Sequence record: MZ475898.1
DNA length: 64,000 nt
Reading direction: 5' to 3' (one strand)
Shown here: positions 9,262 to 59,126 of the stretch, in pieces
How positions within the stretch are numbered: position 1 is the first letter of the stretch
Layout: every line of letters begins with the position of its first letter
The notes under the pieces: model-generated
What the model was told of the DNA's origin: nothing
Databases searched by the model: none
Seen by the model: only the letters and a program-made list of their open reading frames with translations
Translations under genes and position numbers: made by a program

Positions 9262-9277
9262 ATGACCTCACAATACG

Positions 9278-9300
9278 AAAAAGGAGGACCGAAGCCCTCC
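9278..9300 (-). terminator. Rho-independent terminator
   Basis: GGAGGGC-TTCG-GTCCTCC-TTTTT after the sheath gene. Confidence 0.9.
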
Positions 9301-9307
9301 CTTATGA

Positions 9308-10984: not shown

Positions 10985-11010
10985 GATTTATCTCCTTTTA
11001 AGACTGGTAG

Positions 11011-11016
11011 AAATTA
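11011..11016 (-). promoter_or_regulatory. TAATTT promoter-like motif
   Basis: cgaTAATTTC between a terminator and the sheath RBS. Confidence 0.6.
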
Positions 11017-11038
11017 TCGTCAATTAGGAGATAAATGC

Positions 11039-11064
11039 AAAAAGGGCAGCCGAAGCCACCCTTT
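11039..11064 (-). terminator. Rho-independent terminator
   Basis: AAAGGGTGGC-TTCG-GCTGCCCTTTTT. Confidence 0.9.
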
Positions 11065-11067
11065 AGG

Positions 11068-22322: not shown

Positions 22323-22361
22323 CTAGTCCTATCAGAGTGTGTAACACAATATGATGGCTGT

Positions 22362-22370
22362 TATTTACAG
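22362..22370 (-). promoter_or_regulatory. CTGTAAATA promoter-like motif
   Basis: Intergenic, between a terminator and the polA start. Confidence 0.65.
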
Positions 22371-22383
22371 ATTTAGAAACGAG

Positions 22384-22407
22384 AAAGGGCAGCCGAAGCC
22401 ACCCTTT
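22384..22407 (-). terminator. Rho-independent terminator, identical 24-mer to 11041-11064
   Basis: AAAGGGTGGCTTCGGCTGCCCTTT. Confidence 0.85.
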
Positions 22408-22423
22408 GTGATTTAACAGAGAC

Positions 22424-51266: not shown

Positions 51267-51291
51267 GTGTTCCTTAAGACATTTCTGAAAT

Positions 51292-51336: not shown

Positions 51337-52614
51337 CTACTTCTTCTTTTTCTTCTTCTTGGGCTTTTCGTCTTCGTCGTCATCTTCGACTTCGTTACCC
51401 AATTTCACAGACAGCTTGCCTTCATAAATGTCGGCCATCAGACTGAGGATAGTTGATTCCAACATAATGTCAGCAGGCACGGAGGTACTGTTGAATGCTA
51501 CCTCTGCTTCTGCCAGTGCTTTCTGCAAATAGATCAGGCAAACAAGATTGACCTTAATCTTCTCTTGCTTAACCATATTCAGGAACATCTTGAGGCCAGC
51601 AGACTGCCACTTGTTTGTGTCAGAGTAATGACCAAGTGCACCGTGAAGTACCCAGCGTGCTTTCGCTACGATTGCTCGTGGGTTGTTTGCTTCACGCAGG
51701 AACTGAATGACACCGATAAGGTCCATCGCAATGAACGCACCGATAGTCTGAACTGCTTTGCCTTCCATTTCGATTTCTGGATCGGCTGCCGCAAGTTCTG
51801 CCACCAGCTTCTTATCAAACGCTTCACCACCTTTAACTGACGCAAAGATGTTTTGCATCATCGTGATTGCACCGCGCATCTGACCGCCTGAATACTCGGC
51901 AACCTGATGCAACGCTGATTCAGCTTTATCACGCGCTTTATCTTTCTTAGGCATGATGCCCAGAGTATCAGCAATCTCGGACAAACGCTTCGCAATGATG
52001 TCGGTAGGAATCGGCCTGATAGGAAGTTGTGTCATACGACTGATCATCGTATCTTTCATCTTCTCAGGGTTCGTGGTCACAAAGATGAACACAACATGCG
52101 CTGGTGGTTCTTCAATGATCTTGAGGAACTTCGATTCGGCTGCGCTCGACATAAGGTGCGCTTCATCGAGAATGAACACACGGCGCTTGAACGTAGCCGC
52201 CAGTGGTGCTGAGTCAACGATACGCTGCGAGCCTTCAACTTTACCCGAGTCGCTACCCATATCGAACTCTTGCACGTCAGGGTGCTGGCCGTTATTGTAC
52301 ACCATGCGACACGAGGCACACTTACCACACGCGCTAAACGAATCACAGTTGATGTACTTTGCGACGAGACGCGCAAACGTTGTTTTACCACTACCCAGAT
52401 GGCCTGTGATGATCATCGTTGATGGAACCGTTTTCGACTTCTGCCAACCGTTCATGATCTTAACGATGTGGTCTTGACCTACATAGTCTTCGATGCGCTT
52501 CGGTCGAAACCGAGCGGCAAAGTTTACCGTAGTCAGTTCAGTAGAAGATTCGGACTTGGAACTATCTGAACCAAAGTCGCGTTTCTTCTTCTTTTTCTTT
52601 TCTTCTTTCGCCAT
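51337..52614 (-). CDS. dnaX: Clamp loader AAA+ subunit (DnaX gamma/tau-like)
   Basis: RFRP....D.VGQ, GHLGSGKTT, C..C..C..C zinc site, FILDEAH, TI.SR-like MISRM. Confidence 0.93.
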   Translation of the reverse strand: MAKEEKKKKKKRDFGSDSSKSESSTELTTVNFAARFRPKRIEDYVGQDHIVKIMNGWQKSKTVPSTMIITGHLGSGKTTFARLVAKYINCDSFSACGKCASCRMVYNNGQHPDVQEFDMGSDSGKVEGSQRIVDSAPLAATFKRRVFILDEAHLMSSAAESKFLKIIEEPPAHVVFIFVTTNPEKMKDTMISRMTQLPIRPIPTDIIAKRLSEIADTLGIMPKKDKARDKAESALHQVAEYSGGQMRGAITMMQNIFASVKGGEAFDKKLVAELAAADPEIEMEGKAVQTIGAFIAMDLIGVIQFLREANNPRAIVAKARWVLHGALGHYSDTNKWQSAGLKMFLNMVKQEKIKVNLVCLIYLQKALAEAEVAFNSTSVPADIMLESTILSLMADIYEGKLSVKLGNEVEDDDEDEKPKKKKKKK

Positions 52615-52755: not shown

Positions 52756-52965
52756 TCATGCAAAGCTCATCTCCCAGCGAGGCGTCACGCGGGAAAAGAG
52801 TTTAAATTCTTCAGGTGGGTTAGACTTGATTTCGTTGATGGCTGCTTCAACGTCATCGTAATCGTGAAGTCCAGCTTGTACGGTCTGCGTAACGAACGTA
52901 CCATCTGAATTGATCAAGTCAGCGACGACTCGATAACTTGGGCGACTCTGTTGCATCCTAAACAT
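52756..52965 (-). CDS. Small hypothetical protein (69 aa)
   Basis: AGGAG RBS; CTGTAAACA motif upstream. Confidence 0.7.
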   Translation of the reverse strand: MFRMQQSRPSYRVVADLINSDGTFVTQTVQAGLHDYDDVEAAINEIKSNPPEEFKLFSRVTPRWEMSFA

Positions 52966-53004
52966 AACATCTCCTGAATATTAAACCTCAACGTTCTTGA
53001 ATTA

Positions 53005-53013
53005 TGTTTACAG
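53005..53013 (-). promoter_or_regulatory. CTGTAAACA promoter-like motif
   Basis: Intergenic, upstream of 52965. Confidence 0.55.
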
Positions 53014-53057
53014 ATTGCTTCGGTCCGTCCTTGCGATCTAAAGTCAGAATAGTCTTA

Positions 53058-53411
53058 AACTCCAATAAGCTCTTGTTAGAACGTATTGGAGTCCACCCTG
53101 TCAGATGACGGTCGTTCAGGGCTTTCTCCCCGCACACTTATATAGCGCCGTGCGGCAGGCTGCGCTCGCGAGGTCTTATGTTTTCCGCTGCTGGTGGTCC
53201 AGGAGGTAGCGTCCTCTGAAAAGATACCTGCAGCACAACAGCCTCGCTATCGGCCAATCAGCGATACGCGGTGTTACGCTGAATCGACCTAAGTGACTCT
53301 GGCCGAGTCGTGTACAAAAAAGAGTTCGGTCCCAATCAAAAAAGATGGCGAAAAAGAAAGGGACCGAACAAAAGGCACTCAGCGCAAACTCCTTATGCAC
53401 TGTTTTTGTAC
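53058..53411 (-). ncRNA. Candidate structured non-coding RNA of unknown class (~350 nt)
   Basis: Longest gene-free gap in the window; TAATTT motif 6 nt before the first helix; several perfect inverted repeats (9, 10 and 10 bp) plus shorter stems. Confidence 0.6.
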
Positions 53412-53417
53412 TTGGGA

Positions 53418-53423
53418 AAATTA
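53418..53423 (-). promoter_or_regulatory. TAATTT promoter-like motif driving the candidate ncRNA
   Basis: cacTAATTTT, same 10-mer as at 51261. Confidence 0.55.
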
Positions 53424-53451
53424 GTGACATTCCCTTTTATTCAGAAAATTC

Positions 53452-54027
53452 TTAGTCGATGGTTAATTGCATCTGACGCAGAGTTTTGAGAAAATGTCTG
53501 CGTTGGAAAGATTCGATGCGGTACGGATGATCGATATGTTTGTTCCAGCCCTGATTAAATAGCATAATGTTGTCGGGCAATTTCTCGGCACCATTCCACT
53601 TCGGTTTATCATCTACAAGCAGGTAATTGCCTGCACCATGAACCGAATCAAGGAACGCAATTTTATCAGGGTAAATCAGTGGACTAATCACATGGAAGTG
53701 ATCTATCACGTGGAGGAGTCCGCGCATCGCCAGACGCGAGTAACGTTCTCCGAGTTCGTGATACCCACGATGAGTGCAAACACCAACAGAGTAACCCTGT
53801 TCTACCAGATACTCCAGCGTGCCCTTTGCATACTGACGCATACGCGCATCGAGCATGAACGTCGGACTGTTCAGTATCTCACTGAAATGAATACCGCCAT
53901 TCTCAGGCGTAATGTATTCACCTTCACCGATAGTAACTCCTTTGTCGGCGAGTTTCTTACGCATCACAGGGTGAGTCTCGAAAAACGTATCATCCAAATC
54001 GAAAAAGATTTTCTTTAGCTTTTGCAT
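53452..54027 (-). CDS. HAD-family 5'(3')-deoxyribonucleotidase-like protein
   Basis: FFDLDDTF motif I, CTHRG motif II, K, LLVDDK motif IV, LFNQGWN. Confidence 0.85.
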   Translation of the reverse strand: MQKLKKIFFDLDDTFFETHPVMRKKLADKGVTIGEGEYITPENGGIHFSEILNSPTFMLDARMRQYAKGTLEYLVEQGYSVGVCTHRGYHELGERYSRLAMRGLLHVIDHFHVISPLIYPDKIAFLDSVHGAGNYLLVDDKPKWNGAEKLPDNIMLFNQGWNKHIDHPYRIESFQRRHFLKTLRQMQLTID

Positions 54028-58712: not shown

Positions 58713-58754
58713 TCTTTTCTCCGGAAATACTTCTTTCTCGCTCTTTCTTCTTGT

Positions 58755-58763
58755 TGTTTACAG
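58755..58763 (-). promoter_or_regulatory. CTGTAAACA promoter-like motif
   Basis: ~43 nt upstream of the polymerase-like gene. Confidence 0.55.
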
Positions 58764-58922
58764 AATCCACATCAAAGCTGCACGCTCGATAGAGCTAGGG
58801 CTACAGCCATACAACTGGATAGAAGATAGCTATGCAGCGGGCAAGCGAGCGGTGCGCTCAAGCTACGGAACAATGATATAGATACGGGGGCTTTAGGCGC
58901 ACTCCGTTTTCTCACCATCAAA

Positions 58923-58928
58923 AAATTA
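58923..58928 (-). promoter_or_regulatory. TAATTT promoter-like motif in the non-coding region
   Basis: tcTAATTTT with no convincing gene immediately downstream. Confidence 0.35.
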
Positions 58929-59061
58929 GATCCCGTCTTTAGCTAGCTATTACCCACCCGCTACAGCCCTAAACCCATGCTTAAACGCGATCATCGTTTT
59001 GAAAAAGATCTCGCTCAAACCATGTAAATTTTTTCGCGTTTTGACCCAAATTCTGTTCATT

Positions 59062-59081
59062 TTTTAACCAAAGGGTTAAAA
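59062..59081. repeat. Perfect 8-bp inverted repeat in an AT-rich tract
   Basis: TTTTAACC-AAAG-GGTTAAAA. Confidence 0.8.
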
Positions 59082-59126
59082 TCAGAGAAAAACCCGTTTA
59101 AAATCAAGGACTTTTCTCCGTTTAGA

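Follow-up and report, generated by a model that had tools for sequence, protein, structure and literature searches.

A conserved and highly structured RNA element in the replication gene block of Erwinia phage pEa_SNUABM_25 and related jumbo phages

The largest intergenic region in the stretch of DNA analysed here (64,000 nucleotides, referred to below as the window) holds a conserved, strand-specific and highly structured RNA element of about 355 nt. The window is 100% identical to Erwinia phage pEa_SNUABM_25 (MZ475898.1), a jumbo phage of 263 kb. Compensatory changes above the level of the controls, strand specificity and the lack of a shared open reading frame place the element among conserved structured non-coding RNAs in the generic sense, and the comparative support for it is unusually clean. 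At the level of RNA families the element is new, as no described family, paper or database entry among those searched matches it. With Rfam 15 (4227 models), no match at the gathering threshold was found in the whole window, the permissive mode (E up to 10) gave chance-level matches only in the gap, and nothing was found at the RNA in 8 homologous loci, in agreement with the view of the sequence-only reading that the RNA is an undescribed one. That reading also saw none of the hallmarks of tRNA or tmRNA, and ARAGORN indeed finds neither in the window. The literature on these phages and on phage non-coding RNAs does not mention the element.

Genomic location and distribution

All annotated genes of the window are carried on the minus strand and are tightly packed. 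The gene-free gap of about 485 nt that had been described from the sequence is present at 52966-53451 (486 nt). It is flanked upstream by a 191-aa gene encoding a HAD/nucleotidase-like protein and downstream by a gene for a 69-aa protein, followed by the DNA polymerase clamp-loader gene, and it is part of the replication gene block, where DNA polymerase and SbcCD are also encoded close by. The 5′ end of the RNA was set by the promoter geometry and the first base of helix P1, while the 3′ end was taken as the end of hairpin P10.

53057..53411, minus strand: RNA gene, 355 nt, both ends predicted
52756..52965, minus strand: gene of the 69-aa protein, found after the RNA in lineages 1-4 and 6

The clamp-loader protein (51337-52614 in the window) has lysine-rich runs at its N- and C-terminus. 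The second-largest gap of the window (58713-59126, 414 nt) contains both promoter-like motifs described below; its folding is not unusual (z 0.0) and its distribution is patchy, a few Alexandraviruses matching at about 70% identity and the 98%-identical sister phages giving no match.

Six lineages keep the RNA-bearing gap, numbered here in the order SNUABM_25 group, Alexandravirus, Sasquatchvirus, Yoloswag/Rivsvirus, Salmondvirus and Yersinia phage. The sister phages of the window, Sasquatchvirus Y3 and all Alexandraviruses, Dickeya phage AD1 among them, have a gap of similar length at the equivalent place. More distant relatives were found by a profile search and by a covariance model of the 3′ core of the RNA (R1), which together matched Yoloswag, pEa_SNUABM_5 (Rivsvirus), Dickeya phage JA11 (Salmondvirus), Yersinia phage fHe-Yen9-02 and several metagenomic contigs. 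Two further loci with weak model matches (L315 and L116) proved on inspection to be unrelated sequence, and a locus search in viral contigs based on the clamp loader added little. In PaBG and Lu11, which belong to the same phage group at a greater distance, the place of the RNA has no gap. No similar sequence was found in E. coli genomes and plasmids, and a scan of bacterial genomes for the core pattern gave chance matches among at least 120 listed loci, with no nhmmer match and a best model score of 16 bits. These searches weakly indicate that the RNA is absent from bacteria, among the genomes and matches listed.

The size of the RNA is modular, being about 210, 340-355 or 440-480 nt around one common core. 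When compared with three relatives, the RNA region has 73-77% identity, the two flanking genes 62-70% and the clamp-loader gene 76-78%. By these identities the conservation of the RNA equals that of the clamp-loader gene and exceeds that of either neighbouring gene, which shows purifying selection on the element as strong as that on the clamp-loader gene.

Folding, compensatory changes and strand specificity

The sequence-only reading had staked its candidate on a folding energy better than that of dinucleotide-shuffled controls and on compensatory substitutions in related phages, and both were found. The minus strand of 53058-53411 has a minimum free energy of -135.6 kcal/mol, compared to -108.1 ± 5.4 for its dinucleotide shuffles (z -5.07, with 0 of 100 shuffles as good), and the plus strand of the same region gives a z of -2.84. 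The RNAalifold structure of 16 full-length sequences comprises 104 pairs, at which 93.9% of the cells hold a standard pair and 29 pairs are changed on both sides; when the partners are slid by 1-3 columns as a control, pairing drops to 31-46% and the double changes to 4-11. Reading the same helices on the opposite strand lowers pairing to 85.1%, because each G-U becomes C-A, and the RNA is therefore the minus-strand transcript.

For the 3′ core, 22 distinct sequences from all lineages were aligned to R1 and are 93.3% paired, versus 35-43% with slid partners, with 15 of the 28 pairs changed on both sides and none of 500 shuffles reaching any observed measure; this alignment was fitted to R1, which favours R1, and the slid controls and an independent MAFFT-based count agree with it.

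Architecture of the RNA

The RNA has ten helices, an H-type pseudoknot included, and several of its loops and joining strands are invariant in sequence. Its parts, in 5′ to 3′ order of the transcript, are as follows.

53312..53411, minus strand: 5′ domain, in which helix P1 encloses hairpins P2 and P3
53404-53411 with 53312-53319, minus strand: P1, invariant and 100% paired
53396-53402 with 53380-53386, minus strand: P2, invariant GGAGU in the loop, 3 of 7 pairs changed on both sides
53360-53369 with 53324-53333, minus strand: P3, hairpin of 10-14 bp, 6 of 14 pairs changed on both sides
53295..53309, minus strand: P4, GACTC/GAGTC hairpin with a palindromic GGCC in its loop (53300-53304), invariant in lineages 1-3
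53244..53289, minus strand: P5, long hairpin, stem 53277-53289 with 53252-53263
53187..53242, minus strand: P6, central hairpin, 9 of the 14 pairs of its two helices changed on both sides
53173-53179, minus strand: conserved joining motif, just before the H-type pseudoknot (part 53130..53179)
53162-53166 with 53144-53148, minus strand: pseudoknot stem S1, in every lineage, its sequence differing by lineage
53150-53155 with 53130-53135, minus strand: pseudoknot stem S2, in every lineage, its sequence differing by lineage
53122-53129, minus strand: single-stranded GGAG stretch, after the pseudoknot and before P9 (part 53096..53129)
within 53096..53129, minus strand: P9, invariant loop 53104-53113, 7 of 10 pairs changed on both sides in 22 sequences
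53058..53093, minus strand: P10, terminal hairpin, outer 7 bp identical in 22 of 22 sequences, inner pairs covarying

All the stems of the sequence-only reading, CCCTG/CAGGG among them, are in place at the coordinates it gave, and what had to be redrawn is the pairing around two of them. The CCGCAC/GTGCGG helix exists, not as the plain stem that was drawn but as one of the two stems of the H-type pseudoknot, which lies between the joining motif and the conserved GGAG and was absent from that drawing. The pseudoknot is found in all lineages, the Yersinia phage (L320) included, with constant order and loop sizes and with covariation in both stems. Its stems are of 5-7 and 5-8 bp, the second strand is separated from the third by 0-3 nt, and the third loop is A/U-rich and 6-9 nt long; in each sequence the pseudoknot scores within the top 0-2.3% of that sequence's own shuffles.

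The second revision concerns TGGCC at 53252-53256, which had been taken for a loop complementary to that of P4. The sequence is there, yet it more likely forms the 3′ strand of P5, whose outer stem shifts in length and sequence in step from one lineage to the next. The hairpin originally drawn corresponds to an alternative pairing of 53244-53248 with that same 3′ strand. In the Y3 lineage all three segments of the P5 area have changed together, so both pairings are possible there, and on the strength of this one lineage they may constitute a switch. As P4 is invariant in lineages 1-3, covariation speaks neither for nor against it. The same holds for the suggested loop-loop pairing, both GGCC elements being invariant, and the probable place of the second in a stem weakens that idea.

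The 12-nt loop core of P5 (53264-53276) is invariant in lineages 1-3, and the loop of P6 carries a conserved GCUACC motif that is retained in lineages 4 and 6 as well. In pEp_SNUABM_52 (L009) a 10-nt tandem duplication is seen in the P5 loop (columns 206-215 of alignment A1), so this loop, elsewhere invariant in lineages 1-3, tolerates duplication. The C-rich loop motifs of P5 and P9 appear to have swapped hairpins between the Alexandravirus-type RNAs and the Yoloswag-type RNAs (L085, L086), as might be expected if both were equivalent sites at which a single partner binds. Before the 3′ strand of P1 comes a run of U that varies from 6 to 13 in the relatives; it lies in the 53320-53325 region (columns 154-165 of A1) and differs even among near-identical phages.

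Transcription of the RNA

Two kinds of promoter-like motif and a short near-palindrome surround the RNA gene.

53417..53424, minus strand: motif B, CTAATTTT, promoter-like, with a -10-like TAATTT (53423-53418), then 6 nt, then the proposed +1
53005..53013, minus strand: motif A, CTGTAAACA, ahead of the 69-aa gene and belonging to that neighbour, not to the RNA
53441..53454, minus strand: 14-nt near-palindromic element, which overlaps the 191-aa gene at its stop codon and precedes the proposed start by about 30-43 nt
53044..53057, minus strand: second copy of the 14-nt element, directly after P10, so that the RNA gene is flanked on both sides

Taken as a -10-like element, TAATTT would place the start at G 53411, the first base of P1, with the 6-nt spacing that had been claimed. 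All five window copies of CTAATTTT lie on the coding strand and inside intergenic gaps, versus 1.6 expected by chance, and lineages 1-5 all conserve the motif ahead of the RNA. Of the late-type promoter ascribed to the RNA, the promoter-like motif with its strictly intergenic placement stands, whereas the term late is not supported, since the genes behind CTAATTTT have no known function. Motif A, CTGTAAATA, is present in 10 copies in the window, all of them on the coding strand (1.0 expected), and resembles the annotated "putative middle/late promoter" of phage Lu11. It stands ahead of the DNA polymerase, SbcD and clamp-loader genes, so the sequence does not tell when the RNA would be expressed. 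PaBG, of the same phage group, encodes a sigma-70-type factor (PMC7412058). A scan for sigma-70 promoters and terminators made no calls in the gap, and none at P10.

The 14-nt element at 53441..53454 is invariant across lineages 1-3 in alignment A1, and a related copy at 51275-51288 lies upstream of another CTAATTTT site; a search of the whole window allowing 2 mismatches found no enrichment. The element may serve as an operator or form an upstream part of the promoter, and it may be bound by a dimeric regulator.

Salmondvirus (lineage 5) has an RNA of about 210 nt, with the promoter motif and the 3′ core and lacking the 5′ domain. There the RNA is followed by a canonical terminator, a new promoter motif and then the clamp loader, an arrangement which is the best evidence that the RNA would be transcribed as a unit of its own. 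Lineages 1-4 and 6 lack a canonical terminator between the RNA and the next gene, and P10, being followed by only 3 U, is not a canonical terminator either; the 3′ end of the RNA is thus uncertain in these lineages. Elsewhere in this phage, canonical terminators are GC-rich stems, many of them with a UUCG loop and a U run (for example at 203-264, 9262-9307, 10985-11067 and 22323-22423), and the next promoter motif usually comes immediately after.

Without a terminator before the next gene, the RNA of lineages 1-4 and 6 could be, or could also be, a long 5′ leader acting in cis, either as a riboswitch-like sensor or as an antiterminating RNA, to control the 69-aa gene and the replication genes. 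In favour of such a leader, the RNA is always upstream of the clamp-loader block and in the same orientation, the terminators are located further downstream, and the joint change of the three P5-area segments in Y3, with its two exclusive pairings, is switch-like. We nonetheless consider a leader unlikely. Besides the strong terminator and fresh promoter motif of lineage 5, lineages 1-3 and 6 have a promoter motif after the RNA and before the small gene, and in lineage 4 the first downstream gene is a different one. Moreover, known leaders of the riboswitch or antitermination type are far smaller than 350 nt with ten helices.

Possible function

Since the tests for repeats, for enrichment of GGA, for antisense targets and for a GC-skew signal gave negative results, we adopt, with moderate confidence, the reading of a stand-alone, trans-acting, non-coding scaffold RNA whose invariant loops bind a partner. 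Here, a separate gene would give rise to a stable RNA from the CTAATTTT-type promoter, starting at 53411, through the host RNA polymerase, perhaps assisted by a sigma factor of the phage. The covarying helices would then act as a rigid scaffold presenting the invariant loops, namely the GGAGU of P2, the C-rich loops of P5 and P9 and the loop of P6, together with the purine-rich strand that follows the pseudoknot. Some partner, a protein being the likeliest, would bind these elements, so that the RNA would serve as a decoy or as the core of a ribonucleoprotein. Contacts with another RNA or with a small ligand would suit the invariant loops no less than a protein; as for antisense targets, a search of the whole window with these loops gave chance-level matches only. 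The fixed place of the gene between those of the nucleotidase-like protein and the clamp loader suggests a role in that phase of infection in which replication and nucleotide metabolism fall.

The 69-aa gene co-occurs with the full-length RNA and is absent beside the shortened RNA of lineage 5, that is, where the 5′ domain is missing. Its product has a predicted fold of good confidence (pLDDT 86) with no significant PDB match and a weak resemblance to small phage inhibitor proteins. We considered this protein as an RNA-binding partner and set it aside, the confident model showing no RNA-binding fold. The Yoloswag homologue is unannotated and lies at about 2527-2733 of locus L085 (170125-170331 of the record), in an apparently empty 479-nt gap.

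Perhaps the RNA assembles with itself through its palindromic loops, either as a packaging-motor ring resembling that of phi29 pRNA or as an RNA-only multimer similar to ROOL or GOLLD. The RNA is large, ornate and phage-borne, the GGCC of the P4 loop is invariant in lineages 1-3, and CG-rich palindromic tetramers are seen in other conserved loops, the matching loop being GGCC in JA11 and CAUG in locus L109, both palindromes. Against this, invariant GGCC loops yield no covariation, the second GGCC is in the stem of P5, and palindromes of four letters are common by chance. Furthermore, no Rfam model of pRNA, ROOL, GOLLD, OLE or raiA matches. The phi29 analogy of the sequence-only reading has failed wherever a test could be made, and we hold self-assembly to be quite unlikely.

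In another rival reading, the RNA would act as a sponge or mimic towards a host factor that recognises GGA or GGAG, for instance by titrating RsmA/CsrA or imitating a Shine-Dalgarno sequence. A-N-GGAG is kept in the P2 loop, with N being A, C, U or G, all lineages retain a second GGAG following the pseudoknot, and Enterobacterales, the hosts here, use the Rsm/Csr system. Still, GGA is not enriched (8 occurrences versus 5.5 ± 2.1 in shuffles) and has only 2-3 conserved sites, no Rfam model of the CsrB or RsmB type matches, and the rest of the architecture would be left unexplained, which makes a sponge very improbable. A type III antitoxin RNA (ToxI-like) was rejected too: no tandem repeats were found, and the neighbours are the nucleotidase-like HAD protein, the 69-aa protein and the clamp loader. 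For the antitoxin-mimic RNA suggested by the sequence-only reading, repeats of the antitoxin-RNA type were likewise looked for and not found.

We see scarcely any likelihood that the region is a replication-origin element at which the transcript primes or opens the DNA. Its location within the replication gene block, beside the clamp loader and near DNA polymerase and SbcCD, would be in line with an origin, but there is no GC-skew inflection near 53 kb, there are no repeats, and a structure that is strand-specific through G-U pairs points to RNA rather than duplex DNA.

Finally, a protein-coding gene can practically be discounted: an ATG-initiated ORF of 84 codons does exist at 53176-53430, yet its ATG is upstream of the predicted transcript start and its frame is cut short in the relatives, lasting 47 and 57 codons in sister phages of 98% identity, where the varying length of the U run (slippage) breaks it, 16 codons in the Alexandraviruses and 51 in the case of Y3. 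No ORF is common to the relatives over the RNA region, and the sequence-only reading was right not to take this ORF for a gene. Short ORFs are annotated over the RNA in three published genomes (YOLOSWAG_203, 1743-1907 of L085; MPK73_gp214, 1734-1859 of L086; fHeYen902_106c, 2723-2929 of L320), whereas in the others the gap is left blank. These three are probably spurious hypothetical ORFs, and the annotation is corrected here.

To return to the scaffold RNA, we entertain only tentatively, and with rather little expectation, the idea that it founds a new class of large, functional RNAs in phages, be it a ribozyme, a ribonucleoprotein core or a self-assembling particle. If this is true, jumbo phages of Enterobacterales would use an RNA during replication or to disarm a host system. 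Classes of large structured RNA are rarely found, and GOLLD, ROOL, OLE and pRNA each opened a line of work of their own. With six lineages, a pseudoknotted core, modular additions and invariant loops, the present RNA is directly usable for structure determination and for the search of a partner.

Comparison with known RNAs

A group I intron does not describe the locus, because the gap lies between complete genes with their own stop and start, the strands of the pseudoknot are only 0-6 nt apart, and no Rfam model matches. The stable RNAs of T4 (species 1 and 2, bands C and D) are likewise stand-alone phage RNAs whose function is not known; they lie in a tRNA cluster and are about 120-140 nt long, while the window here has no tRNA genes. 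CsrB and RsmB are of similar size (about 350 nt) and share an A-N-GGA motif in a hairpin loop, but they are built of many repeated GGA hairpins, whereas the RNA described here is not repetitive. Like the present RNA, HK022 put and EAR are structured and are transcribed immediately ahead of an operon with terminators in it; they are of 70-120 nt and act in cis only, while the present RNA is 3-5 times larger and, in lineage 5, is followed by a terminator and then a new promoter.

The likeness to phi29 pRNA is that of a phage-encoded structured RNA with its own promoter, for which complementary loops were suggested; here, the phage is a 263-kb jumbo phage rather than a small phi29-like one, the loops, being invariant, show no covariation, and one of the two suggested loops is probably a stem. 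GOLLD, ROOL, OLE and raiA resemble the RNA in being hundreds of nucleotides long with many covarying helices and pseudoknots; they are often borne by phages or prophages, comparative genomics led to their discovery, and at that time they had no known function. Compared to these, the RNA of pEa_SNUABM_25 and its relatives is smaller than GOLLD or ROOL and is confined to one lineage of Enterobacterales jumbo phages.
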